From positions 1-64,000 of the forward strand of contig MCFE01000223.1 in the NCBI GenBank assembly GCA_002104905.1: a stretch of DNA of 64,000 nucleotides. Reading direction: 5' to 3'. Shown piece by piece: positions 14,128 through 33,132 of this stretch. The translations under genes and the position numbers were made by a program. This stretch comes from Basidiobolus meristosporus CBS 931.73. Taxonomy: Eukaryota > Fungi > Basidiobolomycota. The notes under the pieces were generated by a model that saw only the letters and a program-made list of their open reading frames with translations, had not been told where the DNA came from and did no database searches. The first letter of the stretch is position 1; the number at the start of each line of letters is the position of its first letter.

Positions 14128-14989
14128 TATGACAATATTTCAGTATCTTCTGTACAAATAATGAGATATGAAAGCAAAACTATCAAAGGCAAGACTGCTC
14201 GTGAGATGAAATGTATACAGTGCGGACAAGTCCAAGTTTAGAAATCAAAGCAAATATATTTAAAGTCAGAGCGAGATATTTGTAACAAATATTCACCAAA
14301 AACCCTTAAGAAATCGGTCGGCACTGTTATGAATAAAAATATTAACTGCAGAAAAAGTATAATAAAGCAACTCAAAAATAGCAGAACAAAGCATCACGGG
14401 TAACTGATTGTGGGCATGAAAGGGCTGACTTGAATGCAAGTTTAACATTACATAACGTGCCTAGCATTAGTGGGATTTAGTGCCTGGACATAGGAGATAT
14501 ATAGGCAGAGCTCATTTCAACGATGCCAACAACAATGGTGACATATTGAAGGGTTGGATTACATTGGTGTAACATTGCCAACCAGAAATGTTGGTGTTTC
14601 TTCCCCTTGTCACAACCGCCACTCATTAATATAGTGGCTACTTATTAACTTTTTGCCATGACCAGCTGGAAACATCTGGATTTCAGCCATCGATGATGAC
14701 AACAAATTATATGTATCAGGCGCTAGAATCTCCGTAAGTTTGGGTTTTACTTAATCAAATTACGTGTGTTTTCTCTCACTTTCCAACCGAGATCAGTCTC
14801 CCAATCAACACAGGCCACATCTGGTGATTATTTAGCAACCCTCGTGTAAATACTTTCCAGGGATACTAGAGTCAAGAGCCTTGCTCGTAGTTTTCGATCT
14901 AGTGTCAGCTATAGACTGGTATTTCACGTTCCGTTAGACTCGAAGTAGTTCTATATCCTTCTTTGTTGAATTCTCTTTAGCTCATCATA

Positions 14990-15405
14990 ATGGTAAAGTG
15001 CCTCGATTTCATCTCTGACCCATTATGTAGATATACTAAAGTTCTTTCCACGGTTTCTATACGCTCTTTATGACAGTCTGGTGGTCGCAATCTCAGGTAA
15101 GCTTTTGAACACGATGAAGGTTAAGTGAATGCACATGTATTAATGTTTCCCGCAACAATTAAATAGAAGCCGTTCCAATCCCTCAAAGGCTGGTGCCTCC
15201 CGTAACACCGCTGCGGCCAATGTTTCGCGTTTGTACTCCGAGGACGCGCCTGGGCTTCGAGTGTAGGTCATTTTTCATTTATTTGCCCATGGCACATGTC
15301 CTGACAGTTGTGTCTAGTGATCCTGTGGTCGTACTTGTTCTCTCTCTGGTCTTCATTGCCTCCGTTTTTGCCCTTCATATCTACGGCAAGCTTACCCGAG
15401 GTTAA
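14990..15405 (+). CDS. SBH1: Sec61 translocon beta subunit (about 70 aa, 4 exons)
   Basis: Spliced product M-SGGRNLR-SRSNPSKAGASRNTAAANVSRLYSEDAPGLRV-DPVVVLVLSLVFIASVFALHIYGKLTRG*; LY(S/T)xDAPGLxVDP followed by a TM anchor is typical of Sec61-beta. Confidence 0.9.
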
Positions 15406-15885
15406 ATGCTCCTGTACTGGCCGCCCGCGTTCCGCTTTCAATTCTATGAAACTCACCATTTAGAACTTGAGCGAATTTTACTGTTGAATATACATAAATA
15501 ATCATTCCATTCCGTTGGTTTTAATGGGATTTTCAGGAAATTTGGCTTATGTTGAGCAAATTGTTTAAAAAATGCTCCTGGTTTGCTCTAATCAGGCCTA
15601 CACTCAGCACCACCCACTTGAGTGAGGTCAAAAAAAGTGGGGTGTCGATCGAAAAAAAACTTCTTAAACCATCAATGCTACTGTTATCCATGATGTGTAT
15701 AGAATAACCAAAAAAGAGGGATGTCCCCAGAAAACTTTGGCTAGCGGGGGAGGAAGCTCACTCATTGGTACATCTCGAATCACCCCGAAGATTGGCATCC
15801 ATCATTGTAAGTTATGCTTGGAACATTCAAGCTATCACAGTTGGTTACTTCTAAGAAACACACCACTTAGAACAGGGAGTTTACC

Positions 15886-18012
15886 ATGGAGGATGATGAG
15901 GTATTTGAGCCTTACTATATCCTGTTATTTCTACTTTCCGCATCCAAGGAGGGCCTGATATTTTTGTATATCTAGACTCCATTTCTTCTACAATTCTATT
16001 TTCCCTTCAATTGCTCTATTTCTGTCCCAGTTGTTCACCCGTCAGTATACTTATCTCTTCACATAGTTATTCCAAAAGGCCAAGGAAATGAAGGCCCAAG
16101 AAGAGCAACAAAAGCAAAATGCTGAGAATCAAAGGATTCAAGAAGAATACGAAAGAGCAGCCCGTGTTCTTTTTGATATGGTATTATTTATACCACGCCA
16201 AGCCTACCAAAGGCATATACTAAACGTTCTTTAACCAGGTATCAGAGTCCAAAGATAGCGAATACAAAGTTCACCGTTTGGAAGTGAATGGCTCGAATTA
16301 TACCAGGTCCAGCGTATTTGAAACTGTGTTTGGACAGACTATGAAATCTCGAACCTTGGGCGAGATTATCAGCAATACTCGTGTTGCTGGAAGCCGCCTT
16401 CAGAGATTGGGGATTTTCAAAGACGTAGATATTACCTTTGATGCGGCTAAGGATCCTTTTGCTCCTCGCGATTCCATCGATATCTTAGTCAACGTCGAAG
16501 AGAGGAGCCGATTCTGGGCCAAGACCGGAACTGAGATTGGGGATGGTGAAGGAAATATGGTACGAATGGAGAATATTGCGATTAGCATGGCACATGTTCA
16601 TTAATTTCCCACCAAAGAATTCATCAGTCAACTTCCGAAACGCATTAGGAGCTGGAGAAACATTCGAGGCTAACGTTTCCTTCGGTACTCGAACCAGCTC
16701 TGCTTTCCAGGTAAATAATTCATTTGTGCACACGCGGCGAAACAAATTACAACCTTAACGCTTTCTGCAATAGGTATCTCTGTCGAAACCCTTGAATGCT
16801 AACCCTGATGCAGTTGTCGATGTTACTGCGTATCAACAATCCCGTAACAACAAGCTGTATAGTTCTCATGAGGAGCTAACTCGTGGTGGACTATTGCGTT
16901 TCAGAGTAAGTAGTGGGTTCGTGCAACCATCTAATGAATTCCATACTAATTTTGTGCTCAGGGTATTTCACGCTTCGGCTATCATGAGCTTGTCTACGAT
17001 ACTGTGTGGAGACAGATTCACAAACTCGACGACCTTGCTTCTCTCAGGTATGTTGACCTGATCTGTACATACATTACAGGGTTACTTAAGCGGTCCCTTT
17101 TAGTGTGAGAAACGAAGCTGGCCATTCTGTAAAATCCTCCATCGCCCATGTGTTCATGCACGATAGGCGCGATGACACCGTCTTGCCAAGTAGTGGCTAT
17201 TACCTGAGACTTGCACAGGTATATCCATTGATGATAAGCATACATTATAGTGCGTTTAATTGACTGTTCAATATAGGAATTCGCTGGTCCTGGTGGCGAT
17301 GTTAGTTTCGTCAAGAATGAAGTCGAGGCTCAAGCCAATTATAGCCTTGGTAGAGGATTTGTAAGTCAAGTTTGCTTGTTCTTTTACGCGAACTGAACGC
17401 TAACCTTGAAGTCAGATCCTTAGTTCTTCTTTACGTAGTGGACTCTTAGTGCCCTTGTTTGGGGAGAAATCACATATCAACGATCGCTTTTTCCTTGGTG
17501 GGCCTACTTCTGTTCGTGGTTTTAGATACGCCGGTATTGGCCCTAGAGATGGAAGTAAGATATGGCTACGTTGTACTTGGTGCTGAGCTGACCTAACTAA
17601 CACATGAATTGTCAATACTAACAGAGGATGCTCTTGGTGGTGACGTCTACTGGTCTGGCGGAGTAAGTCTGTACACACCACTTCCTAAAGTCAAAAGTGA
17701 AGCTCTTAAGGGGCATATTTTCGTCAATGGAGGTACCCTGCTTCCCTCTGTCGATATCAGTAAGTGTTGTCAATGTAACTTAGTAACAAACCCAGTTCCA
17801 AATATTTACCCGTTTGACCATTTTTAGCTAAGCCCGTTCCTGAAACAATCAACCGACTAGTTAAGACACCTAGTGTCGCTGTTGGTGCCGGCCTTGTGTA
17901 CAGACACTCGTTTGTTCGCCTAGAACTTAACGTGTGTCTACCAATCTCAGTTACCGCTACTGATCAATTCAAGAAGGGAATCCAGCTAGGCGTTGGCATG
18001 AGTTTCATGTAG
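15886..18012 (+). CDS. SAM50: Mitochondrial outer-membrane SAM complex core subunit (Omp85 family), multi-exon
   Basis: POTRA-like RLQRLGIFKDVDITFD; NDRFFLGGPTSVRGFRYAGIGPRD; DALGGDVYWSGG; terminal beta-signal ...FKKGIQLGVGMSFM*. Confidence 0.92.
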
Positions 18013-18975
18013 AGCATTTCATCCCACACATGATATTTGACGAAGCCCAACATTTTCTTTCGTTGTCTCTTAACACACTTGAACATACAGCAACTTGGTT
18101 CTGATTGCACACTATGCTAAAGAAAGTACAACTTCCTAAAATCTCCGGTCAATGTTAACCATCCAACCATACCGCAATTATTTATCCCATTCTCACGATG
18201 GCGGTTTCCATTGATTACTCATACATTTTGATAGTTTTCATATAAAGAGGCATTTCAACTCCATACCATGCCGGGTTTATCGGTTAGCAAATCCCTGTTC
18301 CCTTGACGAATCCCACTCTTACATATATTTATTATATGAATGCTGGTTCTTGCATTTTGCAATATATGTGTTTGATGTGACTAAATGGATGCCTCTATTG
18401 TATTCGTCTATCTTTATATGCAACATGACCTACAGCAGGCCAGCCGATCCTCACGTAGTATCGAGGCGAATGGGTGCTTGCTGGATACCCAAAGTAGACT
18501 TGAATGGGTTCCCACCGACCATATCTAGCACCGCATTCACAAAAGGCAAGTACCCTCGCTTAAATTCGATGGACCAAGGTGGTTCGTTGTACCCCCAGGA
18601 TGTAGGGGGATATGTCTTATGCTGCGACCCGTACACGAGGGATTTTGCAGATGGCTCATTTTATCCACATCGAAGAAGATGAAAGGGGCATTGCTTACGA
18701 AAACAATCGAGTAGGAATAGGCAATCCAATCGAAGTTACGTTCCACACAAGCCGGTAGAGTCATGGTGCATATGACGAGATAATGGTGTCCAGACATGGT
18801 GAAGATCCAAGGAAAGGTGCGCTCCCACAAACCATGCATGCCTAAACTGAATGGCCCCTATGCTCAACCACCGGATCTCTTGCTAATGGTGGCGATGGGA
18901 TTGTATAAAAGTCTCACGTACGTCCCTAAGAAAGGCATTCAAACACTGTCCAATCCAAGCTAATAATACGACACG

Positions 18976-19992
18976 ATGAAGGTGACACTTATGGCAACTC
19001 TTCTTTACATCGCCTCCATCTCCGCCCTACCCACTGGTGATTATTCCGGAAATGGGGCTGGAGGTTACGACGTCAAAGACTATTCTGGCGGAGGAAGTGG
19101 CCACGGTGGCTCCTATGATACTGGTAACCATGGAGGAAATGGGGGCGGCGGAGGTGGTGACCACAATTCCAATGGAAATAATTATGGTGGAAATGGTGGT
19201 GGCGGTAATGATAATAGCTACGATACTAAAGACTATGCAGGCGATCATGAAAAGGGCTACGGTGGCAATGGAGGTGGTAACGAAGGTGATTATGAAGGAG
19301 GCCATGAAGAGAGCTACGGCGGAAATGGAGGTGACCACGGCGGAGATTATGATGAGAGCTATGGTAGTAATGGTGGTGGTGATAGCTATGACACCAATGA
19401 CTATGGAGGTGACCATGAAGAGAGCAATGGTGGTGGCCATGAAGGAAATTACGAAGAGAGTTATGGTGATAACGGAGGTGGTGGCAGTGGAAATAGCTAT
19501 GACACTGAGGAATACGGAGGTAACGGCGGCGGCCACGGAGGCGATTATGAAGAGAGCTATGGCGGTAATGGTGGTGGTAGTGGAGGCGACAGTTACGATG
19601 CTGGAGATTATGGAGGTGATCACGATGATAGCTACGGTGGAAATGGTGGTGGTCATGGTGGCGACGATGAGGTAAGCTATGATGGTAATGGTGGTGGTCA
19701 CGGAGGCGACCATGAAGAAAGCTATGGTGGTAACGGTGGTGGTCACGGAGGTGATTACGAAGGAAGCTATGGCGGTAATGGCGGCGGTGGTAGTGGTAAT
19801 AACTACGATACCAAGGACTATAGTGGTGGAGGTCATGGAGGTGACCATGAGGGAAATTACGGTGGAAACGGCGGTGGCGGAAGCGGCTACGATACAAAAG
19901 ATTACAGTGGTAATGGATCTGGTCACAGAAGTTACAAGAGATCAGTTCAAGTCAGAAATATCTTGCGAGGCGTAACGCTCCGAGGGAACTAA
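18976..19992 (+). CDS. Secreted acidic Gly/Asp/Tyr repeat protein, array copy 1 (338 aa)
   Basis: Signal MKVTLMATLLYIASISA-LPTGDY; GG(D/N)H..SYGGNGGG repeats; ends YKR-SVQVRNILRGVTLRGN; TATAAAA at 18904. Confidence 0.9.
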   Translation: MKVTLMATLLYIASISALPTGDYSGNGAGGYDVKDYSGGGSGHGGSYDTGNHGGNGGGGGGDHNSNGNNYGGNGGGGNDNSYDTKDYAGDHEKGYGGNGGGNEGDYEGGHEESYGGNGGDHGGDYDESYGSNGGGDSYDTNDYGGDHEESNGGGHEGNYEESYGDNGGGGSGNSYDTEEYGGNGGGHGGDYEESYGGNGGGSGGDSYDAGDYGGDHDDSYGGNGGGHGGDDEVSYDGNGGGHGGDHEESYGGNGGGHGGDYEGSYGGNGGGGSGNNYDTKDYSGGGHGGDHEGNYGGNGGGGSGYDTKDYSGNGSGHRSYKRSVQVRNILRGVTLRGN

Positions 19993-20436
19993 GATACAAT
20001 CAGGTCCCATCATCTTGCTCTAGTCGCAGTATGAAGAACTCTGAAGAAGCGCAATTTATTCAGAGCCTCATCAATTCATTACATCACCCAAAGTTAGAAT
20101 AACGATACCAACCTGCTACCAAGAATATGATGTATTTTCAGGCCCAAGCTTGAGCTCAATATGCAAACCAATAAAGCAATCTTCATTTTACTTCATATCC
20201 CAGATCACTGATGAAACTCCAGAAATAATCGCTTGTTAGGGATTCCTAAGGTGATCAAAGTAGTAGATCAAACCATATTACAACCGGTATATTCCTCGAT
20301 CATCATTTGAGTATGCGAAATATATCCAAAAAAGCGTGTTCGTATGGGGCAGAACATGAAAACAATCATTCACTCACATCTAGAACTATTCACTATATGC
20401 AGATGAAGAGATGTAAGCTAGTGTACTAATGTGATC

Positions 20437-20520
20437 CACCTGCATCGATATGTACCATACATTAACAATGAGATGATAGCTAGATTCCACGGTTACACCG
20501 TATAGTGTGGGCGTATAAAA
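20437..20520 (+). promoter_or_regulatory. CACCTGCAT motif plus TATA of array copy 2
   Basis: CACCTGCAT 20437-20445; TATAAAA 20514. Confidence 0.6.
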
Positions 20521-20591
20521 GGTCTTGCCTGCGCTCATAAATATCATACAATTCAAAGCCGCTCCAAAGCCTCAACAATAACTGCATCAAA

Positions 20592-21371
20592 ATGAAAGTA
20601 GCCATTATCACAGCCCTTTTATATATCGCCTCTGTCTCGGCATTACCCACTGGTGACTACTCCGGCACTAGTGGTGCTGGGAGCTATGATGTCAAAGATT
20701 ACTCTGGTGGTGAGAGACACGGGGAAGGCAAAGACTACTCTGGTAGTGGGCATGGCAATGACCATGGTGAAGGATCCTATGATACCGGCAACCATGGAGG
20801 TAACAATGCAGGGTCAAGCGACAGCTACAAGAATGGAGACTATGAAGGTGGCCATGAGGAGAGCTACGGTGGTAATGGCGGTGGAGTAAGTGGTAGTGGC
20901 AGTGATGATACAACCGAGTACGAAGGTGGTCACGGCGGCAGTTATGGTGGAAATGGGGGCGGTCATGGTGGGGACAGCTACGATTCTAAGGATTATGGTG
21001 GTGACCATGACGAAGGCTATGGAGGAAACGGTGGTGGCCATGAGAGTGATTATGATGATGGTCATGGTGGTAATGGTGGTGGCGACAACTATGACACCAA
21101 GGACCTTAGAGGAGATCATGATGAGAGCTACGGTGGAAGTGGTGATGGCCATGAAGGCGACTATGATAATGGCAATGGTGGTGGCGGCAGTTACAATTCC
21201 AATGATTACGGAGGTGATCATGGTCAGAGCTATGATGGAAATGGTGGCGGTGAAAGCGGTAGCGGCTATGACACAAAGGACTATGGCGGCAATGGAGCTG
21301 GCCACAAGAGCTACAAACGATCAGTTCAACTCAGGGAGGCTCTACGAAGCATCGCTACAAAGAAGGCCTGA
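20592..21371 (+). CDS. Secreted acidic Gly/Asp/Tyr repeat protein, copy 2 (259 aa)
   Basis: Same signal, repeat and KR-tail architecture; tail SVQLREALRSIATKKA. Confidence 0.9.
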   Translation: MKVAIITALLYIASVSALPTGDYSGTSGAGSYDVKDYSGGERHGEGKDYSGSGHGNDHGEGSYDTGNHGGNNAGSSDSYKNGDYEGGHEESYGGNGGGVSGSGSDDTTEYEGGHGGSYGGNGGGHGGDSYDSKDYGGDHDEGYGGNGGGHESDYDDGHGGNGGGDNYDTKDLRGDHDESYGGSGDGHEGDYDNGNGGGGSYNSNDYGGDHGQSYDGNGGGESGSGYDTKDYGGNGAGHKSYKRSVQLREALRSIATKKA

Positions 21372-21917
21372 AATAACTACTAGCCTTGCCCCTTGACCAC
21401 GCTACGGTGCATGCTGTCTTCGTGTAGTGCATCTGATTCATGACATTACTCTCCGCTACTTCGCATGCTGTCCCCCTACGAATTGATGTTGGGAGACCAC
21501 TCTTAGCATAGACTCACTATTATTCCATTTTACCAGGCGATCAATTGCACCCAAAATACAGCCCAATAAAGCAATTCTCATCACACCCCAAATTATTTCT
21601 TTGTGTTTCTGCGTTACAATTTGGCGACGCTAGGCCTGCAGATTTCCTAAAATGACTCCGTAGTATCAGCATTTTGACCTTACATAATCACCAGAAATGT
21701 CAGCAAGCAATCCTGTCCTGGTGAAACCTCAATCACCTTCAAGATTTGTCACAATACAACAACCTATACCTAGCCTGTACCTTACCACAACCCACCACAG
21801 CAACATAGATCGGGTACGATGTGCTCTAGAAACAGGGTCCTGGTGCAGAAATGGGCTGCCTCAGGGACGATTAGCCGGATAAATATGATGGGGTTTGAGG
21901 ACTGCAATTCCATAGTA

Positions 21918-22010
21918 CACCTGCATACTAGCATTAATATGGGCCATATACCTATGCTCGGCAAATTGCAGATGTACCAAGTGGCCCTGACCTATTTGAG
22001 GGTGTATAAA
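21918..22010 (+). promoter_or_regulatory. CACCTGCAT motif plus TATA of array copy 3
   Basis: CACCTGCAT 21918-21926; TATAAA 22005. Confidence 0.6.
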
Positions 22011-22098
22011 TAGACTGGCGTCCTGCTCCTATCAAACATATTCCTCTCGCATCATTCTATTCGGGTCACAACTCAAGGACTAAAGCAAAAGCAACAAC

Positions 22099-22893
22099 AT
22101 GAAAGTAGCCCTCATCGCAGCCCTTTTATATATCGCCTCTGTCTCGGCATTACCTACTGGTGACTACTCTGGCAATGGTGGTGCTGGGAGCTATGATGTC
22201 AAAGACTACTCTGGTGGCGGGGGACATGGTGGTGGCAAAGACTACTCTGGTAGCGGGCATGGCAATGACCATGGTGAAGGATCCTATGATACCGGCAACC
22301 ATGGAGGTAACAATGCAGGGTCAGGTGACAGCTACAAGAATGGAGACTATGAAGGTGGCCATGAGGAGAGCTACGGTGGTAACGGCGGTGGAGTAAGTAG
22401 TAGTGACAGTGATGATACAACCGAGTACGAAGGTGGTCACGGCGGCAGCTATGGTGGAAATGGGGGCGGTCATGGTGGGGACAGCTACGATTCTAAGGAT
22501 TATGGTGGTGACCATGACGAAGGCTATGAAGGAAACGGTGGTGGCCATGAGAGTGATTATGATGATAGTCATGGTGGTAATGGTGGTGGCGACAACTATG
22601 ACACCAAGGACCTTGGAGGAGATCATGATGGAGGTTATGGTGGAAATGGCGGTGGTCGCGAAGGCGACTATGAGGAAAGTTACGGAGGCAATGGTGGAGG
22701 TAGTGGCGGTAGTTACGATACCACGGATTACGGAGGTAATCATGATCAGAGCTATGGTGGAAATGGTGGCGGTGAAAGCGGTAGCGGCTATGACACAAAG
22801 GACTATGGCGGCAATGGAGCTGGCCACAAGAGCTACAAACGATCAGTTCAACTCAGGGAGGCTCTACGAAGCGTTGCTATAAAGAAGGCCTGA
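22099..22893 (+). CDS. Secreted acidic Gly/Asp/Tyr repeat protein, copy 3 (264 aa)
   Basis: Same architecture; tail SVQLREALRSVAIKKA. Confidence 0.9.
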   Translation: MKVALIAALLYIASVSALPTGDYSGNGGAGSYDVKDYSGGGGHGGGKDYSGSGHGNDHGEGSYDTGNHGGNNAGSGDSYKNGDYEGGHEESYGGNGGGVSSSDSDDTTEYEGGHGGSYGGNGGGHGGDSYDSKDYGGDHDEGYEGNGGGHESDYDDSHGGNGGGDNYDTKDLGGDHDGGYGGNGGGREGDYEESYGGNGGGSGGSYDTTDYGGNHDQSYGGNGGGESGSGYDTKDYGGNGAGHKSYKRSVQLREALRSVAIKKA

Positions 22894-23420
22894 AATGACC
22901 TACTGATCATGTCCCTTGAATGTGTTTCTGTACGTGGAGTATGGGACTAACTCCGACCCTTTCCGTTTTCTATTTCTCACGTTACCATCCACCATAACAC
23001 TGTTAGAAGAGCACTTGTAGCTTTCATATTCCATTTTACCAGGTGATCTATCTCATCCAAAATACATCCTAATAAAGTAACTTTCATCATACACTAAGCT
23101 GTTATCACAGCTGCCCTGAGCATGGTCTAGCAGATGTTGATATAACCATATGCCTCCTTCACGATATATATCGTAATGCTACTCTTGAGTACTTATTATC
23201 TGTATGGCGCCATTGATGGATGGGGAGCAAAAGAAGCCATGGATATATCAGTTGATTCATTTGGATGCAGCAATCTAACATATTAATTCTTTGGTGCTAT
23301 CTAATGTGGTTTCAAAAGGTTGACTTTATTCGAATGTACGGATCCCCTAGCTCAAGTATACATATCACAACTTTTTCCCGATGCAGGTGACAAACCGAAA
23401 GTGATGGCAATGCAATGATC

Positions 23421-23512
23421 CACCTGCATATCTCCTTCAGTATACACCTTACATCTACTGTTGAGCTAAGAATAGAACTTGTCGGTAATCCAGTATCTTG
23501 GTTGTATATAAA
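23421..23512 (+). promoter_or_regulatory. CACCTGCAT motif plus TATA of array copy 4
   Basis: CACCTGCAT 23421-23429; TATATAAA 23505. Confidence 0.6.
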
Positions 23513-23600
23513 TGGGATCCTTCCTTACTCTTGTCTAACATATTCTTTTCGTACTGTTCCATTAGAGTCACAACCCAAGGACTAAAGCAAAAGCAACAAC

Positions 23601-24380
23601 ATGAAAGTAGCCCTCATCGCAGCCCTTTTATATATCGCCTCTGTCTCGGCATTACCCACTGGTGACTACTCCGGCACTAGTGGTGCTGGGAGCTATGATG
23701 TCAAAGACTACTCTGGTGGCGAGGGACACGGGGAAGGCAAAGACTACTCTGGTAGTGGGCATGGCAATGACCATGGTGAAGGATCCTATGATACCGGCAA
23801 CCATGGAGGTAACAATGCAGGGTCAGGCGACAGCTACAAGAATGGAGACTATGAAGGTGGCCATGAGGAGAGCTACGGTGGTAATGGCGGTGGAGTAAGT
23901 GGTAGTGACAGTGATGATACAACCGAGTATGAAGATGGTCACGGCGGCAGTTATGGTGGAAATGGGGGCGGTCATGGTGGGGACAGCTACGATTCTAAGG
24001 ATTATGGTGGTGACCATGACGAAGGCTATGGAGGAAACGGTGGTGGCCATGAGAGTGATTATGATGATGGTCATGGTGGTAATGGTGGTGGCGACAACTA
24101 TGACACCAAGGACCTTAGAGGAGATCATGATGAGAGCTACGGTGGAAGTGGTGATGGCCATGAAGGTGACTATGATAATGGCAATGGTGGTGGCGGCAGT
24201 TACAATTCCAATGATTACGGAGGTGATCATGGTCAGAGCTATGATGGAAATGGTGGCGGTGAAAGCGGTAGCGGCTATGACACAAAGGACTATGGCGGCA
24301 ATGGAGCTGGCCACAAGAGCTACAAACGATCAGTTCAACTCAGGGAGGCTCTACGAAGCATCGCTACAAAGAAGGCCTGA
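23601..24380 (+). CDS. Secreted acidic Gly/Asp/Tyr repeat protein, copy 4 (259 aa; near-identical to copy 2)
   Basis: Same architecture; tail SVQLREALRSIATKKA. Confidence 0.9.
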   Translation: MKVALIAALLYIASVSALPTGDYSGTSGAGSYDVKDYSGGEGHGEGKDYSGSGHGNDHGEGSYDTGNHGGNNAGSGDSYKNGDYEGGHEESYGGNGGGVSGSDSDDTTEYEDGHGGSYGGNGGGHGGDSYDSKDYGGDHDEGYGGNGGGHESDYDDGHGGNGGGDNYDTKDLRGDHDESYGGSGDGHEGDYDNGNGGGGSYNSNDYGGDHGQSYDGNGGGESGSGYDTKDYGGNGAGHKSYKRSVQLREALRSIATKKA

Positions 24381-24926
24381 AATGACTACTAGCCTTGCCC
24401 CTTGACCACGCTACGGTGCATGCTGTCTTCGTGTAGTGCATCTGATTCATGACATTACTCTCCGCTACTTCACATGCTGTCCCCCTACGAATTGATGTTG
24501 GGAGACCACTCTTAGCATAGACTCACTATTATTCCATTTTACCAGGCGATCAATTACACCCAAAATACAGCCCAATAAAACAATTCTCATCACACCCCAA
24601 ATTATTTCTTTGTGTTTCTGCGTTACAATTTGGCGACACTAGGCCTGCAGATTTCCTAAAATGACTCCGTAGTATCAGCATATTGACCTTACATAATCAC
24701 CAGAAATGTCAGCAAGCAATCCTGTCCTGGTGAAACCTCAATCACCTTCAAGATTTGTCACAATACAACAACCTATACCTAGCCTGTACCTTACCACAAC
24801 CCACCACAGCAACATAGATCGGGTACGATGTGCTCTAGAAACAGGGTCCTGGTGCAGAAATGGGCTGCCTCAGGGACGATTAGCCGGATAAATATGATGG
24901 GGTTTGAGGACTGCAATTCCATAGTA

Positions 24927-25019
24927 CACCTGCATACTAGCATTAATATGGGCCATATACCTATGCTCGGCAAATTGCAGATGTACCAAGTGGCCCTGAC
25001 CTATTTGAGGGTGTATAAA
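24927..25019 (+). promoter_or_regulatory. CACCTGCAT motif plus TATA of array copy 5
   Basis: CACCTGCAT 24927-24935; TATAAA 25014. Confidence 0.6.
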
Positions 25020-25107
25020 TAGACTGGCGTCCTGCTCCTATCAAACATATTCCTCTCGCATCATTCTATTCGGGTCACAACTCAAGGACTAAAGCAAAAG
25101 CAACAAC

Positions 25108-25827
25108 ATGAAAGTAGCCCTCATCGCAGCCCTTTTATATATCGCCTCTGTCTCGGCATTACCCACTGGTGACTACTCTGGCAATGGTGGTGCTGGGAGC
25201 TATGATGTCAAAGACTACTCTGGCGGCGGGGGACATGGTGGTGGCAAAGACTACTCTGGTAGCGGGCATGGCAATGACCATGGTGAAGGATCCTATGATA
25301 CCGGTAACCATGGAGGTAACGGTGCAGGTTCAGGCGACAGCTACAAGAATGGAGACTATGAAGGTGACCACGAGGAGAGCTACGGTGGTAATGGCGGTGG
25401 AGTAAGTAGTAGTGACAGTGATGATACAACCGAGTATGAAGATGGTCACGGCGGCAGTTATGGTGGAAATGGTGGTGGTGGCAGTGGTAACAGCTACGAT
25501 ACCAAGGACTATGGGGGTCATCACGATGATAGTCACGGCGGGAATGGTGACGGTCACGATGGCGACTATGAGGAGAGCTATAGCGGAAATGGTGGTGATC
25601 ATGGAGGCGAACATGATAATGGCAATGGTGGTAATGGTGGTGACAGTTATGATTCCAAGGATTATGGAGGTGATCATGATGATAGTTACGGTGGAAATGG
25701 TGGCGGTGGAAGTGGCAGCAGCTATGACACAAAAGACTACGGTGGTAATGGAGCTGGTAACAAGAGCTACAAAAGATCGGTTCAATTCAGGGAGACTCCA
25801 CGGAATACTGCTGTAAGGAAGGTTTGA
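25108..25827 (+). CDS. Secreted acidic Gly/Asp/Tyr repeat protein, copy 5 (239 aa)
   Basis: 5' half matches copy 3; tail SVQFRETPRNTAVRKV. Confidence 0.9.
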   Translation: MKVALIAALLYIASVSALPTGDYSGNGGAGSYDVKDYSGGGGHGGGKDYSGSGHGNDHGEGSYDTGNHGGNGAGSGDSYKNGDYEGDHEESYGGNGGGVSSSDSDDTTEYEDGHGGSYGGNGGGGSGNSYDTKDYGGHHDDSHGGNGDGHDGDYEESYSGNGGDHGGEHDNGNGGNGGDSYDSKDYGGDHDDSYGGNGGGGSGSSYDTKDYGGNGAGNKSYKRSVQFRETPRNTAVRKV

Positions 25828-26027
25828 AATGGCAAACTGGCCTTGTTTGTTGAGTATACCTCAGTGCGATGAGTGTAATTCTAGCCCTTCTAACCCAAAC
25901 CAGTACTATTCTTTATTTCCGGCGTTGCCACCTTTCAAATTTTCATGAGCAAAGCACCTACGACTCAAACGCATCCCCTTTCCACTCTACCGAAATTAAC
26001 ATTCCACCCAAAATACAACTCAATAAA

Positions 26028-26522
26028 ATGGCCTCCGTCGTACTCATAGTATCTATAATGACATTGAAACTTATTCATAGTTGTTTGTATAGTCAGGCAG
26101 ATGCTTAACAGTCTATCCTCAAGCGTAAAGTGGAGGTAGTGATTAAAGTGATGGAGAATACGATCACTAAACTAACAGCATCATTGTTATCCTAAATTAG
26201 CAACGTTTATGGACATTATAGTCGTGGCGATGGAAATTTGGGGAAAAGACTAAGAACGAAGGTGAAAGCGACGGTGGTTTTGAAGCTTAACCTACAGTGA
26301 ACCAATAGGAAGAGAGTGATAACATTGACAGTTGGTATGCAACTAGCCATGGATCAGGATGTTATGTTAGCAATGAGAGTACAACTTATGGAAATCAGCA
26401 GTTACGATGTGAAGAGGTGTGCAACTGCGGGGGGTGGAAAAATACATCCAAAAATGATCATCAATTTATTGCAATACAGCAAATCTCAAGCATCTCCTAA
26501 AGTTAGCCCAAACTACACCTGA
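26028..26522 (+). pseudogene. Possible decayed member of the acidic repeat family
   Basis: Hydrophobic N-terminal ORF after caataaaATG, stop-interrupted GGSD*SDGEYDH and EGESDGG segments, and SSYDVK (family motif GSYDVK). Weak. Confidence 0.25.
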
Positions 26523-26770
26523 GCTAAGCAATTTTTACATGCGGATCCTTTTAAGTCAGGCAGTTTGCACATCGTTGCCATGTCCTCCTGACATTTTCCC
26601 ACATGGCGATCACAGCAATACTGAAAAGTAGGTAGAGTTATGAATGAATTATGGAAACAATGAATTCCCACCGGGTAGATCATAAGTGAGTATAATACCC
26701 TTGCATAGAGAAGAATGCAAACTTAGAATTGAATCCCTGAATGAGAGCATGCTACTGCAAATCAAAGATC

Positions 26771-26862
26771 CACCTGCATGCCACCATTACGGTGCACCTC
26801 ACAACAATCCCAGCTTGAGAATGGTCCTCACAATCGATCTCGATCAATTTACCGATATAAAA
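26771..26862 (+). promoter_or_regulatory. CACCTGCAT motif plus TATA of array copy 6
   Basis: CACCTGCAT 26771-26779; TATAAAA 26856. Confidence 0.6.
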
Positions 26863-26950
26863 GCCCACTCACTCTTCATCCATATCAATCATACTCATCT
26901 CATAGCATACTACCACATTCACACCTTTAGAACAAAGCAATTGCATCAAA

Positions 26951-28222
26951 ATGAAAGCAACCCTCATCACAGCACTACTATATGTCGCCTCTGTCTCCGC
27001 ACTACCCACCGGTGACTACTCTGGTGCTGGCAGCTATGACGTGAAGGATTACTCTGGTGGAGGAGGCCATGGAGGTGACACAGACTACGAAGGAAATGGC
27101 AGTGGTGGGTCTTACGATACTGGCGACTATGAAGGCAATGGCGGAGGATCAGGTGACAGCTATGATACAACAGAATACGAAGGCGATCACGAGGACAGCT
27201 ACGGTGGGAATGGAGGTGGTGGTGGTGGTGGTGGTGGTGGTGACAACTATGATACAAAAGACTATGAAAGTGACCATGAGGAAAGCTACAGTGGCAATGG
27301 CGGAGGCGATAGCTATGACACCAAGGGCGATGGAGGCGATCATGAGGAGAGTTATGGTGGTAATGGTGGCGGCGAGAGCTACAATACGAAGGAGTATGAA
27401 GGTGACCATGAAGAAACCTACGGCGGAAACGGTGGTGGGAGCGGCAATAGCTACGATACTAAGGACTATGGAGGAGATCATGAAGAAAGCTACGGTGGTA
27501 ATGGTGGTGGTGATAGCTATGACACCAATGAGTACGAAGGCGATCATGAAGAGAATTATGGTGGTAATGGTGGAGGTGACAACAGTTATGATACTGAAGA
27601 TTATGGTGGTAATGGCAGTGGCAGTGATAGCTATGACACCAATGAATATGAAGGTGACCACGACGATAATTATGGTGGTAATGGTGGAGGAGGTGACAAC
27701 AGCTACGACACCAAAGACTACGAGGGCGATCATGAAGATAGCTATGGTAGTGGCGATCATGAAGGCGATCATGATGAGAGCTATGGTGGAAATGGTGGTG
27801 GTGACAGTTACGATACAAAGGACTATGAAGGTGGCCATGAGGATAACTACGGAGGCAACGGTGGTGGAAGCGGCAATAACTATGATACCAAGGACTATGG
27901 AGGCGATCATGAAGATGGTTATGGAGGCAATGGAGGCAATGGAGGCGGCCATGATGGTAATTATGAAGGCGATCATGAAGATAGCTACGGCGGTAAACAC
28001 AAGTCAAAGCACTGCAAGAATCACGGCAAGAACTATGGTGGCAACGGAGGTGGCAACAGCTATGATACCAAAGACTATGAAGGTGATCACGAGGAAAACT
28101 ATGGTGGAAATGGTGGTGGAAACAGCTACGATACTAAGGATTACGCATCAGGCCACAAAAGTTATAAGAGAGCAATTGAGGTCAGGAATGCCCTTCGAAA
28201 GATTGTAGTTGGAAAGGCCTAA
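26951..28222 (+). CDS. Secreted acidic Gly/Asp/Tyr repeat protein, copy 6 (423 aa)
   Basis: Signal MKATLITALLYVASVSA; 22-24 aa repeats; tail AIEVRNALRKIVVGKA. Confidence 0.9.
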   Translation: MKATLITALLYVASVSALPTGDYSGAGSYDVKDYSGGGGHGGDTDYEGNGSGGSYDTGDYEGNGGGSGDSYDTTEYEGDHEDSYGGNGGGGGGGGGGDNYDTKDYESDHEESYSGNGGGDSYDTKGDGGDHEESYGGNGGGESYNTKEYEGDHEETYGGNGGGSGNSYDTKDYGGDHEESYGGNGGGDSYDTNEYEGDHEENYGGNGGGDNSYDTEDYGGNGSGSDSYDTNEYEGDHDDNYGGNGGGGDNSYDTKDYEGDHEDSYGSGDHEGDHDESYGGNGGGDSYDTKDYEGGHEDNYGGNGGGSGNNYDTKDYGGDHEDGYGGNGGNGGGHDGNYEGDHEDSYGGKHKSKHCKNHGKNYGGNGGGNSYDTKDYEGDHEENYGGNGGGNSYDTKDYASGHKSYKRAIEVRNALRKIVVGKA

Positions 28223-28581
28223 GATAAATAGCATCATGAGAGGTCGATGAATCTACTTCATTACTTTATTAACTAATACATACATGACATTATCAGCTTT
28301 ACCTCATGAATACTAAATGCCCCTATAAATCCCCATCTATACCTGCAAAATGCATTTCAATAAATTGAGTTTTCACTATGTGATCTCCAACTCTATATAT
28401 ACCTTCTACTGCTCATCTATACCTACTCACTCTACTGCTCGTCTATGTAGACTTTGGTGACGCCCAAGGCATCCTTAGTGCTTCTTATGTTCTTCGAAGT
28501 CAATGAAGTATAACGCTGTATTGCAACAGGGTTCATTTACCAAATGCAAGTGACAGAGTGTACTACTGCAAATCAAAGATC

Positions 28582-28673
28582 CACCTGCATGCCAACATTA
28601 CGGTGCACCTTACAACAATCCCAGCTTGAGAATGGTCCTCACAATCGATCTCGATCAATTTACCGATATAAAA
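28582..28673 (+). promoter_or_regulatory. CACCTGCAT motif plus TATA of array copy 7
   Basis: CACCTGCAT 28582-28590; TATAAAA 28667. Confidence 0.6.
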
Positions 28674-28761
28674 GCCCACTCACTCTTCATCCATATCAAT
28701 CATACTCATCTCATAGCATACTACCACATTCACACCTTTAGAACAAAGCAATTGCATCAAA

Positions 28762-29970
28762 ATGAAAGCAACCCTCATCACAGCACTACTATATGTCGCC
28801 TCTGTCTCCGCACTACCCACCGGTGACTACTCTGGTGCTGGCAGCTATGACGTGAAGGATTACTCTGGTGGAGGAGGCCATGGAGGTGACACAGACTACG
28901 AAGGAAATGGCAGTGGTGGGACTTACGATACTGGCGACTATGAAGGCAATGGCGGAGGATCAGGCGACAGCTATGATACAACAGAATACGAAGGCGATCA
29001 CGAGGACAGCTACGGTGGGAATGGAGGTGGTGGTGGTGGTGGTGGTGGTGACAACTATGATACAAAAGACTATGAAAGTGACCATGAGGAAAGCTACAGT
29101 GGCAATGGCGGAGGCGATAGCTATGACACCAAGGGCGATGGAGGCGATCATGAGGAGAGTTATGGTGGTAATGGTGGCGGCGAGAGCTACAATACGAAGG
29201 AGTATGAAGGTGACCATGAAGAAACCTACGGCGGAAACGGTGGTGGGAGCGGCAATAGCTACGATACTAAGGACTATGGAGGAGATCATGAAGAAAGCTA
29301 CGGTGGTAATGGTGGTGGTGATAGCTATGATACCAAGGACTACGGAGGCGATCATGAGGAGAGTTATGATGGCAATGGTGGCGGTGATAGCTATGATATC
29401 AAGGAATATGAAGGAGATCATGAAGAAAGCTACGGTGGTAATGGTGGTGGTGATAGCTATGACACTAAAGACTATGGAGGTGACCATGAAGAGAGTTATG
29501 GTGGAAATGGAGGCGGAAGCGGCAATAATTATGATACCACGGACTATGGAGGCGATCAGGAGGAAAGCTATGGCGGAAACGGTGGCGGTGATAGCTACGA
29601 TACCAAGGGCTATGAAGGTGATCATGAAGAGAGTTACGGTGGAAACGGTGGTGGAAGCGATAATAGCTATGATACCAAAGACTATGAAGGCGATCATGAA
29701 GAAAGCTATGGCGGAAATGGTGGCAGTGATAGCTATGATACCAAGGACTATGAAGGTGATCATGAAGAGAGTTACAGTGGAAATGGTGGCGGTGATAGCT
29801 ACGATACCAAAGACTATGGAGGTGATCACGAAAAGAGCTATGGTGGTAATGGCGGTGGAAGCAACTATGATACAAAGGACTATAGCGGTAACGGAGCTGG
29901 TCACAAGTCATATAAGAGAGCAATTGAAGTAAGAAAAGCTCTACGAAGCATCGCGCTCAGAAAGAACTAA
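28762..29970 (+). CDS. Secreted acidic Gly/Asp/Tyr repeat protein, copy 7 (402 aa)
   Basis: About 13 repeats of DSYDTKDY(G/E)GDHEESYGGNGGG; tail AIEVRKALRSIALRKN. Confidence 0.9.
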   Translation: MKATLITALLYVASVSALPTGDYSGAGSYDVKDYSGGGGHGGDTDYEGNGSGGTYDTGDYEGNGGGSGDSYDTTEYEGDHEDSYGGNGGGGGGGGGDNYDTKDYESDHEESYSGNGGGDSYDTKGDGGDHEESYGGNGGGESYNTKEYEGDHEETYGGNGGGSGNSYDTKDYGGDHEESYGGNGGGDSYDTKDYGGDHEESYDGNGGGDSYDIKEYEGDHEESYGGNGGGDSYDTKDYGGDHEESYGGNGGGSGNNYDTTDYGGDQEESYGGNGGGDSYDTKGYEGDHEESYGGNGGGSDNSYDTKDYEGDHEESYGGNGGSDSYDTKDYEGDHEESYSGNGGGDSYDTKDYGGDHEKSYGGNGGGSNYDTKDYSGNGAGHKSYKRAIEVRKALRSIALRKN

Positions 29971-30979
29971 GTCATCATTGCACATGAGCAGTACTAGAAT
30001 AGCATTACTACACAACTACAAAATCACACCCAACTACCTTCCAATACTAGTGACATTTTACCCCACACCACTTGGGCCATATTTACGCTCCAACATTTCA
30101 GCACTAATAAAGTTAGGAAAGATATTATATTTCATGTAAACCGATTGCCTAATCACTATAGAATAGGGTAGAAATCACGCTAACAATTCAGGCAATATAC
30201 ATACATCAGATAGTTATAAATGATAGGCTGTTGTAAAATACAGATAGCACAATTATGAGGTTTAATCTATGACCGAATCGAAATCCGGATACAACTGCCT
30301 CATGATCTAGATTCTTATGGTCTAGTTGATTGGTGAATTCGGCAGTTTGAGCCGCCACAGCCAGTGGTTTGAATGGCATACGGATACTATTTCGGAAGAG
30401 CAATTTACCCAAACCGATTATATCTTCTTGGGGTCGTGTTGGTTGGTTGGGTGGACTCACAAAATGCTCGGGTTGTACGTTATAATCCGTTAACATCAAT
30501 GTCAATCCCGAAATTATCGACGATAGGGCCAAGTAAATATGAAATTATCGAAAATGAATATAAATTATATTGATTTCGAGACGTCACGTGTATGGAAGCA
30601 ATCAACTGTGATCTTAGCACCAAGCTTGTGTGTACTGATGGTCCAGTAATAGAGTTATACACCAAGCACCGCCACAATAGAAACAATAGAAAGTCTGCAC
30701 TTCCCATTTGACTGCTGATTGGCAATCAGCCATAGAGTTAGAAATTGATTGTATTGGACTGAACCAGAATCTGGAAAATTGTCCGATATCTGTAGTGATC
30801 CTTTATAAAGCGTCCACTTACCTGCTAAAGTCTTTGTTCACAATCGATTGTTGATATTTTCATATAATTATCGCACAGAGGCAGCTCACTCGGCATTATC
30901 TTCATATCTCACTCACAATTATTTCTTGTTCCCATCGACATATCCTATATATCAGTCCTTTCCGTGTTAGTAATATTCC

Positions 30980-32293
30980 ATGACTCTATCTGATAGTAGT
31001 TCGTCAAAATTAGTTCCTCTCTACTCGAGGGATGATACGTGCATATCATCTGGTTTGCCAAGCTTAGGGAAATCTGAGGAGCATGAGGAATTCGCCTCTT
31101 TGTTTCACAATACCCGCAGAGGCCATGTGCCCCCTCCTTTACACGTAGGCTTAGAGTTGGAGCTTTTACGAAATTCTTTGGGCAAGCTTGTTTCACAAAG
31201 GAGGAATAGCAAGGTCCACGAAGCGAACGCGTCGCCGGTATCTAGTACTTTTGAGGACGATGTAGAGAATTCTCGTCCGTTGTCACCAGGCGTATGCAGT
31301 TTACTAAAAGATCTCGAGAATTGCTTGGAAAAAGCACATCGCTCAGACGAACCGGTCACCCCACGCGATGCAGATTTTCACGGGGTTTCGCAAGTCGCTA
31401 TTAAGTCCAGTCGCGATTCAATACCCAGTATATACTCGATGTCAAATTCTTTCAAGCACGAAAGTTTCATTGATAGATCTAGCAGTATGATTGAGTACAA
31501 GCACGATTCTTTTGTTAATCCTATGCTGTCGGCCGACAAGCTGTCTACACACAGTAGCCCAAATGCCTGCATCACCGTCAACGAAGCCTTTATTTCTGCT
31601 ACTTTGGCGGGGTGGTTGTCGAAGCTTTACATCACCAATCCATCCTTTTTAGCCCGAAAGACCTGGAAGCGCCGGTTTTTCATCCTATCTTCGAATATTT
31701 TGTATCGCTTCAAGTCGTTGCAAGCCAACACCACCGCAGACGAGTACTTGGAGATTAATTCGAGCACAATCGCATGCGTCTCCGATAAATTCCCGGGGAA
31801 GAAGTGGGTGATCGAAATCACCAATCCGGGTGCTTCATGGTTCATACAGGCAGAGCACCTGGACGAGCTCAAGACATGGCTGAACGCGCTCAAATCCGCG
31901 ATTATTAAATCCAAGTATAGTGGTCGCATTGTTACGCCCTTGAACGAGCCCAGTGAGTATATGAGTCATGAGAGTGTAGGTGACCCCTCTTGGCGCAGCT
32001 CCTTGTATCCAGTGGCGTTGGATGATCAATTTGACCGAGGTCGTGTTCTACCCCCACAACCTCCGGTTCCTCAAGGAAAGCCACCACAGCCCCCGAGTCA
32101 AGTAACATTACCGGCCAACCATCCAACCGAACCGGATACCCAAAGCGGATATCATCCAAAAGAATCCAGGGCGTCTCTAGATTTATCCTCCTTTGATTGG
32201 AGCAACACCAGCATTGATAAGTTTTTGGGAAGAGTCGGATCCAGCGGACCAGGCCTATTGAGCAGACGGCTCCACCCCGACCATCAAATCTGA
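30980..32293 (+). CDS. PH-domain protein with Pro-rich C-terminal region (437 aa, single exon)
   Basis: LAGWLSKL...KTWKRRFFIL...LYRFK...WFIQAEHLDELKTWLNALKSAI is a PH fold signature; PPQPPVP motif downstream. Confidence 0.85.
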   Translation: MTLSDSSSSKLVPLYSRDDTCISSGLPSLGKSEEHEEFASLFHNTRRGHVPPPLHVGLELELLRNSLGKLVSQRRNSKVHEANASPVSSTFEDDVENSRPLSPGVCSLLKDLENCLEKAHRSDEPVTPRDADFHGVSQVAIKSSRDSIPSIYSMSNSFKHESFIDRSSSMIEYKHDSFVNPMLSADKLSTHSSPNACITVNEAFISATLAGWLSKLYITNPSFLARKTWKRRFFILSSNILYRFKSLQANTTADEYLEINSSTIACVSDKFPGKKWVIEITNPGASWFIQAEHLDELKTWLNALKSAIIKSKYSGRIVTPLNEPSEYMSHESVGDPSWRSSLYPVALDDQFDRGRVLPPQPPVPQGKPPQPPSQVTLPANHPTEPDTQSGYHPKESRASLDLSSFDWSNTSIDKFLGRVGSSGPGLLSRRLHPDHQI

Positions 32294-32483
32294 ATTCATT
32301 GTGTGTACTGTAGAATAAGCATCGATATTTCTGTATATTTCCTGGTTTTCACTTGTATTACTCTCTTTTCAAATTGAAATTGCACATATTCACATCTGAG
32401 GATAGGTTTGACAATAAACACTGATCCAAATATTCAACCGATACCCATCCAACATTCACCTAGACTTGTCACCCTCGCTTTCA

Positions 32484-32987
32484 ATGACTCACGATGGTCC
32501 CCATACCGATGGCTGCTGTGCTCATACGGCGGCCACCCCATATACGCAAACCCTGGAAGAGCTCGACTTTGAGCGCACTTTACACTATGCCTGCACTTTG
32601 GGGGAGAGCGAAAAAGTCGAACGCCTCCTAAAGAAAGGCTATGATGTCAACAAGCTGGACAAATACGGCTACACCCCATTGCACTACGCAGCGCGTCAAG
32701 GTAATCTCGCCATTTGCAAGCTACTTGTTTCCCAAGGAGCGGATGTCAATGCCCAAACCCCAGAACTCGGGTCCACTCCGTTGCATAGAGCGGTTGCTCA
32801 AGGCCATGTGGAAGTCGTCAAGTTACTCATCTCTAAGCGGGCCGATCTGGCTATTGCAAACACCGAGGGCCAGAACGCAGCTCACCTGTCCATAAAGCAC
32901 GGTCAACCAGAAATAAGCGAGTTTTTAAGAGGCGTAAATTCAGATATATTTCAGACTCCAGATAAATCGGGGAATATGATAGAGTGA
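32484..32987 (+). CDS. Ankyrin-repeat protein, ANKRD39-like
   Basis: GYTPLHYAARQG, GSTPLHRAVAQG and GQNAAHLS ankyrin repeats; N-terminal CC..QTLEELDFER resembles ANKRD39 (from memory). Confidence 0.85.
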   Translation: MTHDGPHTDGCCAHTAATPYTQTLEELDFERTLHYACTLGESEKVERLLKKGYDVNKLDKYGYTPLHYAARQGNLAICKLLVSQGADVNAQTPELGSTPLHRAVAQGHVEVVKLLISKRADLAIANTEGQNAAHLSIKHGQPEISEFLRGVNSDIFQTPDKSGNMIE

Positions 32988-33132
32988 GTGTCCTTTCCCC
33001 AAATTTCGAGGAGAGGATGAGCATCCACAATACGAATTCATGAATATGAGCAATAAATGCGGTACGAAACGAACATCATCAAGTGTGATATGGTGGGGGA
33101 TGGTATTTGGTGGATGGCTGGTCAGGAAGATC

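Follow-up and report, generated by a model that had tools for sequence, protein, structure and literature searches.

Background

Several described families of secreted proteins offer points of comparison for the locus reported here, an array of seven genes on contig MCFE01000223.1 of the frog-gut fungus Basidiobolus meristosporus CBS 931.73, each of which encodes a secreted-looking, strongly acidic repeat protein closed by a Lys-Arg pair and a short basic tail. The window referred to throughout is the whole stretch of DNA that was analysed, positions 1 to 64,000 of that contig (64,000 nucleotides). The specificity of the processing protease Kex2 for Lys-Arg is established. In amphibian skin, precursors of the preprodermaseptin type carry an acidic pro-piece of about 20-25 residues, which roughly balances the charge of the peptide, and the peptide itself is an amphipathic helix. 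The Blastomyces adhesin BAD1/WI-1 is a secreted fungal protein with acidic, calcium-binding tandem repeats of about 24 residues and a short C-terminal part by which it is re-attached to the wall. Sandcastle-worm and mussel cements are Tyr-rich hardened materials, and coacervate cements make use of oppositely charged partners. Trematode eggshell proteins, for example Smp14, are Tyr-rich precursors of hardened shells (PMC4014452). Pro-resilin, whose exon 1 encodes the unit GGRPSDSYGAPGGGN, is secreted and then cross-linked extracellularly through its Tyr residues into a di- and trityrosine hydrogel (PMC7794388). Finally, the Kex2-processed repeat proteins (KEPs) are defined by at least three tandem repeats of at least eight residues, each lying between dibasic sites of the form KR, KK, RK or RR (PMC7329392, PMC6339444), and with 43 of them B. 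meristosporus CBS 931.73 is the KEP-richest strain surveyed (PMC7329392).

The present array resembles each of these systems in part. The reading we favour, with somewhat less than even confidence, is that its products are extracellular matrix or material proteins particular to Basidiobolus, which could be cross-linked through Tyr, Lys and His, would bind cations and would lose a C-terminal pro-piece to kexin.

Architecture of the array and evidence of selection

The seven open reading frames (ORFs) are intronless, lie on the plus strand, comprise 239-423 codons and follow one another with start-to-start distances of 1502-1843 bp; all match called genes of equal length on the public MCFE01000223.1 record. 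A preliminary description of this DNA had reported seven intronless same-strand genes of 239-423 aa, spaced about 1.5-1.8 kb apart, and the ORF listing and alignment confirm every detail. It had also described a signal-like start ending in SA-LPTGDYSG, an acidic repeat body, and (H/N)(K/R)SYKR followed by exactly 16 residues, an arrangement that recurs in all seven genes. A second contig, MCFE01000034.1, holds a syntenic sister array of eight members with the same layout, bringing the family to 15 genes (7 + 8). We consider the architecture to be far beyond chance, because it is repeated in these eight further syntenic genes and because coding divergence between copies shows purifying selection.

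For homeologous pairs, the whole-gene ratio of non-synonymous to synonymous substitution (dN/dS, Nei-Gojobori) is 0.08-0.22 at dS 0.3-0.7, and paralogues give similar values, with the caveat that alignment inside the repeats can shift register. Gene 1 and its near-identical homeologue B1 (L004:1965-2993, L004 coordinates being those of a stretch of MCFE01000034.1) have an amino acid identity of 0.89 and a dN/dS of 0.17; dN/dS is 0.09 between gene 6 and B7 (L004:11921-13168) and 0.08 between gene 7 and B8 (L004:13707-15209, 500 aa). Start, frame, stop and architecture are intact in 15 of 15 paralogues. Taken together with the retention of promoter motifs in otherwise diverged promoters and the existence of a homologue in B. 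ranarum, the low dN/dS and the 15 intact frames lead us to regard the genes as real and under purifying selection. Long ORFs on the minus strand and in other frames were rejected as artefacts of the GGT-rich repeats.

At the N-terminus, all seven proteins begin with MK, continue with a hydrophobic core of 12-13 residues and S(V/I)SA, with small residues at -3 and -1, and then read LPTGDYSG. Mean Kyte-Doolittle hydropathy over residues 3-16 is 1.8-2.4; beyond the signal there is no second hydrophobic segment, and no 15-residue stretch exceeds a hydropathy of 0.32. 'Signal peptide' and 'Kex2 site' are used here as rule-based readings of the sequence. On these features the family seems to be secreted and is predicted to be exported. 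A glycosylphosphatidylinositol (GPI)-anchored wall protein was ruled out, the tail having 5-6 charged residues and a mean hydropathy of -0.9 to +0.4.

The Lys-Arg site and the 16-residue tail

In all 15 genes, [HN][KR][SA]YKR is followed by 16 residues, and dibasic pairs in the seven window genes are confined to the last 18 residues. Between gene types, the proportion of synonymous differences (pS) over the six-codon site is saturated (approximately 0.9-1.1) while that of non-synonymous differences (pN) is 0.07-0.11; the codons interchange for Lys (AAA/AAG), Arg (AGA/CGA) and Ser (AGC/AGT/TCA). Since the codons vary synonymously and pN is low at saturated pS, K-R is evidently preserved as a pair of amino acids, in keeping with a kexin site. 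The conserved dibasic site of the preliminary description is thus borne out at the level of the amino acids, its K and R codons varying synonymously.

The tail falls into four sequence types, with a net charge of +3 or +4 in all copies; this charge is constant while that of the body varies nearly three-fold, and the last 23 residues carry +6 to +7 in 15 of 15 copies. Between types, dN/dS is 0.25-0.48 for the tail versus 0.12-0.18 for the signal peptide. Eight tail variants were compared with their shuffles, and none has an amphipathic alpha-helical moment above them: the Eisenberg moment at 100 degrees is 0.10-0.33, and the probability that a shuffle equals or exceeds the observed value is 0.41-0.93. 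Gene 5 has the sole deviant site in the window, NKSYKR, and its tail, SVQFRETPRNTAVRKV, has Pro at position 8, with Thr-Pro replacing Ala-Leu. Its counterparts in the sister array retain the tail consensus, and the tail of gene 5 may be under relaxed constraint.

The acidic repeat body

Between start and site lies a body of 206-390 residues in the window array and of up to 467 in the sister array. Across the seven window genes its composition is Gly 28-36%, Asp 11-14%, Tyr 9-12%, His 3-5% and Lys 2-5%; each body has one Pro, Phe and Trp are lacking, and there are almost no aliphatic residues. Net charge is -30 to -76 in the window genes and -29 to -82 across the 15 copies, with an isoelectric point (pI) of 3.75-4.14, so that the calculated charge passes from approximately +20 to +45 at pH 2 to -29 to -82 at pH 7. 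The long genes are built from a 22-residue unit, S-Y-D-T-K-D-Y-x-G-D-H-E-E-S-Y-G-G-N-G-G-G-x, each copy of which combines a flexible Gly spacer with three Tyr, a single Lys, a single His and six or seven acidic residues; a long copy has 14-20 His and 55-95 Asp plus Glu in all. In 22 units sampled from four genes, 17 of the 22 positions are at least 82% identical. The most regular form, in gene 7, is S-Y-D-T-K-D-Y-(G/E)-G-D-H-E-E-S-Y-G-G-N-G-G-G-(D/N), and gene 1 has a unit of 15 residues, HGGD(Y/H)EESYGGNGGG, with a 45-nt tandem period. The unit consensus is preserved between homeologues at dS of about 0.7, and body length varies by whole units.

An AlphaFold2 model of gene 3, made with the 15-sequence alignment, has a mean predicted local distance difference test (pLDDT) score of 38 and is coil apart from the helix of the signal and a second helix, of low confidence, which spans the C-terminal 20 or so residues; the ESM Atlas model has a pLDDT of 0.38. 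By these models the bodies are intrinsically disordered, and the AlphaFold2 model is too disordered for a fold search. Within gene 6, at positions 27992-28033 of the window, a basic His/Lys insert, GKHKSKHCKNHGKN, breaks the acidic repeats and holds the sole Cys of the whole family. It is conserved at the same place in the homeologue at L004:11921-13168, and this retention in both homeologues makes a function probable, for instance in disulfide dimerisation or as a metal site.

Because the 22-residue unit is strictly conserved and under stronger constraint than the tail, it is the repeat body, and not the tail, that looks like the main product, rather than a pro-piece.

Interpretation

In the scheme that we favour, the repeat body would be the working product, serving as extracellular matrix, wall, spore-coat or adhesive material. 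Kexin would cut after K-R in the late Golgi and so remove the tail, which would act as a C-terminal pro-piece controlling sorting, solubility or assembly, and not as an antimicrobial peptide. The body would bind cations, and oxidative cross-linking of its Tyr residues, either as dityrosine or from the quinone of 3,4-dihydroxyphenylalanine (DOPA) to Lys and His, could harden it or lend it elasticity. Several points weigh against this scheme. The material and cross-linking function is argued from composition and analogy alone, and the neighbourhood of the array holds no peroxidase, tyrosinase or wall-enzyme gene. Exact-protein look-ups returned the genome assembly only, with no transcript-like contigs, and the sequencing runs found are of genomic DNA only, with an even depth of about 109x across an intergenic spacer. 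The tail holds its exact length of 16, R5 and R9 in 15 of 15 copies, a constraint that exceeds the needs of a mere spacer and would also fit a peptide with an activity of its own. Lastly, in the AlphaFold2 model K-R falls within a helix of low confidence; were this helix real, it would hinder cleavage.

That the tail itself is a product was the proposal of the preliminary description: kexin would free a cationic 16-mer with antimicrobial or signalling activity, with the acidic body as its carrier or as a second product. The order of signal, acidic region, K-R and basic peptide suits this proposal, as do the amino-acid-level selection on K-R and the retention of the length of 16, R5, R9 and a net +3 or +4 through four tail types; the tail also varies more than the signal peptide, the direction seen in antimicrobial-peptide families, and the fungus lives among a dense gut microbiota. 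It is nevertheless weakened, because the tail is non-amphipathic, because gene 5 has Pro in mid-tail and because the charge of the tail is not matched to that of the body. The helical moment of the tail is no better than that of shuffles, there is no sign of positive selection, one 16-mer per precursor of 239-500 residues would be wasteful by comparison with multi-copy precursors, and the acidic part has a strictly conserved unit of its own under stronger constraint. We therefore judge a two-product precursor unlikely. A different use of the same charges would leave the site uncut. The cationic block of the last 23 residues on a polyanionic chain would then form a diblock polyampholyte, either anchoring an acidic brush to anionic wall polymers or membranes or driving head-to-tail self-assembly or coacervation. 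The contrast between these blocks and bodies of -29 to -82 is found in every copy, AlphaFold2 runs one continuous low-confidence helix across H-K-S-Y-K-R and the tail, and, in the absence of a GPI signal or other anchor, a role in the wall would need some other means of retention. Yet that the pair should be K-R without exception, and not simply basic, is better explained by a protease site than by a generic charge patch, as is the lack of other dibasic sites in most bodies, and a single short block of +6 is weak against a chain of -30 to -80; an uncut anchor, too, seems to us improbable.

The acidic bodies could instead act as a soluble ion buffer or scavenger, in which D-H-E-E and Y-D-T-K-D-Y would bind Ca2+, Zn2+, Cu2+ or Fe in gut or faeces in the manner of a zincophore or of calsequestrin, with no material role. 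One His per unit flanked by three or four acidic residues, the abundance of His, Asp and Glu in the long copies, the low pI and the switch of charge between pH 2 and pH 7 would all suit such a function. It explains, however, neither the three Tyr and the single Lys of each unit, which are conserved just as well, nor the Gly spacer; read by eye, the unit does not fit the EF-hand or a known metal-site pattern, and the array has no linked gene for a transporter or receptor, so that we hold this to be very unlikely. An EF-hand-type calcium loop as such was rejected on the same mismatch. It is hardly credible that the ORFs are non-functional, that is, silent or decaying low-complexity frames born of a minisatellite. 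The restriction of the available runs to genomic DNA and the fact that the repeats also generate long artefactual ORFs on the minus strand and in the remaining frames would accord with this, but dN/dS is 0.08-0.22, all 15 frames are intact, the start, signal, site, tail length, stop and TATA box are conserved, and a homologue occurs in another species.

A bolder extension of the favoured material function, and a distinctly unlikely one, may be sketched. Polyanionic chains stored with their basic tail and released by kexin could be joined outside the cell with polycationic Gly/Arg/Tyr proteins and cured by tyrosinase or peroxidase, giving a coacervate glue, for example at the sticky tip of the capilliconidia, or an elastic wall resembling resilin, which would drive the ballistic discharge of spores; this would be unlike any known fungal material. 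If expressed, the array would represent a fungal family of sequence-defined, disordered Tyr/Lys/His polyanions with a built-in processing site. Insect elastomers, worm eggshells and marine cements follow a design of this kind, but we know of no fungal example. Poorly understood features of Basidiobolus could then find an explanation, be it the adhesive capilliconidia, the elasticity of the discharge walls, the thickness of the zygospore walls or survival of gut passage, and the proteins could offer a new biomaterial scaffold.

Genomic features of the array

Table 1. Genes, promoters and processing sites of the array (window positions; K-R entries include the 16-codon tail)
Feature	Position	Strand	Remarks
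Gene 1	18976..19992	+	Tail type 1; 338 aa; ORF listing
Gene 2	20592..21371	+	Tail type 2; 259 aa; ORF listing
Gene 3	22099..22893	+	Tail type 2; 264 aa; ORF listing
Gene 4	23601..24380	+	Tail type 2; 259 aa; ORF listing and alignment
Gene 5	25108..25827	+	Tail type 2 but degenerate; 239 aa; ORF listing
Gene 6	26951..28222	+	Tail type 3; 423 aa; about 15 units of 22-24 residues; ORF listing
Gene 7	28762..29970	+	Tail type 4; 402 aa; 15 very regular units; ORF listing
Gene 1 TATA box	18904..18910	+	-72 from ATG; upstream box variant CCA--TGCATGCC
Gene 2 promoter	20436..20520	+	CCACCTGCAT box (-156) to TATAAAA (-78)
Gene 3 promoter	21917..22011	+	ACACCTGCAT box (-182) to TATAAAT (-94)
Gene 4 promoter	23420..23511	+	CCACCTGCAT box (-181) to TATATAA (-96)
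Gene 5 promoter	24926..25020	+	ACACCTGCAT box (-182) to TATAAAT (-94)
Gene 6 promoter	26770..26862	+	CCACCTGCAT box (-181) to TATAAAA (-95)
Gene 7 promoter	28581..28673	+	CCACCTGCAT box (-181) to TATAAAA (-95)
Gene 1 K-R and basic tail	19936..19989	+	K-R codons at 19936-19941
Gene 2 K-R and tail	21315..21368	+	
Gene 3 K-R and tail	22837..22890	+	
Gene 4 K-R and tail	24324..24377	+	
Gene 5 K-R and tail	25771..25824	+	
Gene 6 K-R and tail	28166..28219	+	
Gene 7 K-R and tail	29914..29967	+	

A TATA box precedes all 15 genes; for the seven of the window its distance from the ATG is 72-96 nt (Table 1). Six of these seven also have a CACCTGCAT box at -155 to -182, of which gene 1 has a variant. Allowing one mismatch, the window contains 21 matches to the ten-base CCACCTGCAT pattern where 5.1 are expected; the promoter boxes account for six of them, and eight lie on the minus strand inside coding repeats. 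Between gene types, the promoters cannot be aligned beyond the last 10-90 nt or so before the ATG. The co-regulation suggested in the preliminary description fits with the sharing of the TATA and CACCTGCAT boxes by promoters that have otherwise diverged.

Housekeeping genes of an ordinary kind flank the array, with AROM, a class I tRNA synthetase and an Omp85/Sam50 gene on its upstream side and a PH-domain protein, EB1, Sec6 and a Na/H exchanger downstream. An Rfam scan of window positions 13000-33000 gave no match.

The sister array and turnover of copies

On MCFE01000034.1 the neighbourhood follows the order Omp85, array, PH, EB1, Sec6, exchanger. Collinearity between the two arrays holds at either end, with identities of approximately 90% over 3.4 kb for gene 1 and its flank and of 84-87% for genes 6-7, spacers included. 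Their middles have turned over independently, with four copies in one (20592-25827) versus five in the other (L004:3744-10822) at 77-83% identity, such that the middle copies evolve in concert within each array while the end genes correspond one to one. Within the window array, copies have recently been duplicated or converted. Genes 2 and 4 are almost identical, with a dS of 0.03. An identity of 99.2% is found between genes 3 and 5 across 660 nt, made up of 600 nt upstream and the first 60 nt of coding sequence, and again between genes 6 and 7 across 259 nt, of which 199 nt precede the ATG and 60 nt open the coding sequence.

Some public gene models of the sister array look wrong. A 921-residue model (L004:1980-6142) spans the ORFs at 1965-2993, 3744-4619 and 5357-6142, and models of 293 and 330 residues (L004:6698-7637 and 8193-9243) begin in an upstream 100-codon ORF and not at the conserved MKVALIAALLY start. 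A 100-codon ORF (MWESSLILVEPFSPP...) occurs in two almost identical copies (L002:235-537 and 1730-2032), each upstream of a sister-array gene; it is part of the sister repeated unit, and no counterpart was noticed in the window array. An ankyrin-repeat gene is called between PH and EB1 on the sister scaffold (L004:17729-18205), and the matching place in the window, at about 32466-32987, has no called gene and only a listed 173-codon ORF with a TTG start.

Homology searches and distribution

A Pfam scan of five members returned no family at E <= 1, and word-indexed protein searches with the whole protein, the N-terminal 45 residues and the C-terminal 40 residues found no match. The single match in a profile search of 1.84 billion representatives was a fragment from B. 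ranarum. A scan of the Joint Genome Institute (JGI) metagenomes with the 15-sequence alignment was negative, and the ESM Atlas, queried with the whole protein and with the tail, gave sub-threshold leads only. These blanks are weak evidence, because the protein collections are without annotated members of the family itself: the six window members tried and four of the eight sister members were missing, though they are called genes on the NCBI contigs, probably owing to their low complexity. With that small weight attached, the claim that the proteins belong to no named family holds, the Pfam, word-indexed and profile searches having given no characterised match. Together with the signal-like starts and the arrays, this supports the view of a secreted-looking, co-arrayed and apparently undescribed family. 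For annotation, it would follow that a 15-copy genus-restricted family, partly mis-modelled in public records and absent from large protein libraries, is missed by standard pipelines.

The B. ranarum AG-B5 protein (KAK9759633.1) is a diverged partial homologue of 85 residues, cut by the end of its contig. Its gene (L001:739-1221) adjoins one for a CAP (PR-1-like) secreted protein, and the model ends at a GTAAGT donor just short of the contig end; where the B. meristosporus genes are intronless, this copy may be interrupted by an intron. A second Basidiobolus genome run also yielded diverged pieces, including the signal-peptide region. So far, then, the family appears to be genus-restricted, having been seen only in Basidiobolus. 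Another run, X3, is labelled as the same sample as two genome runs, and there the locus is absent save for short repeat fragments that are 90-95% alike, in contigs that reach 62 kb; a possible explanation is that X3 represents another organism, or another library, entered under that sample.

Comparison with known systems

Like the KEPs, which include the alpha-factor precursors and Ustilago Rep1, the family is fungal and combines a signal peptide, tandem repeats and a dibasic kexin site (PMC6339444, PMC7329392). The N-terminal endoplasmic reticulum signal peptide expected of a KEP is found here by rule, as MK, a hydrophobic core and SVSA before LP. Unlike those of KEPs, however, the units are contiguous, without dibasic separators, and the sole conserved site follows the whole body; membership was rejected on this ground. 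Seven Basidiobolus KEPs have been classed as 'type S-3' (PMC7329392). They are unlikely to be the present family, since KEP repeats must be dibasic-separated, and the KEP definition itself sets the two apart. A pheromone precursor of the alpha-factor type was also rejected: neither MF_alpha nor MF_alpha_N was matched in Pfam, and the Atlas resemblance, with a score of 0.65, was weak and at the level of features.

The preliminary description had likened the layout to that of the amphibian skin antimicrobial-peptide precursors. The order of signal, acidic part, K-R and cationic peptide is indeed the same, but the likeness does not extend to an amphipathic helix or to a short, charge-balancing pro-piece: the acidic part has 206-467 residues with a unit of its own and carries -29 to -82 versus +3 or +4 in the tail, and there is no homology. 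With BAD1 the family shares a fungal origin, secretion, acidic tandem repeats of about 24 residues and a short C-terminal part. The repeats of BAD1 differ in being folded Cys/Trp loops, its C-terminus is EGF-like, it has neither Gly/Tyr disorder nor a dibasic site, and no homology was found.

Closer in composition are materials cured through Tyr. The eggshell and cement precursors are likewise multi-copy, Gly/Tyr-rich secreted proteins with Lys and His nucleophiles, which are cured by tyrosinase or peroxidase; the present family differs from them in being strongly negative without phosphoserine and in having no demonstrated cured fungal structure, and there is no homology. Pro-resilin is similarly secreted and disordered, with short Gly-rich tandem units, spaced Tyr in a D-S-Y-G context and an acidic pI, and the Basidiobolus bodies have the regular Tyr of such disordered Gly-rich units, at three per unit and a pLDDT of 38. 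They show neither the chitin-binding (Rebers-Riddiford) domain nor Pro-rich units nor sequence relatedness in Pfam and homology searches. Unlike pro-resilin, they are almost free of Pro and far more acidic, have Lys and His in each unit and are followed by K-R and a basic tail, and their cross-linking is a prediction. By composition and repeat logic, the nearest analogues of the family would be the Tyr-cross-linked disordered materials, with which it may share a working principle rather than membership.

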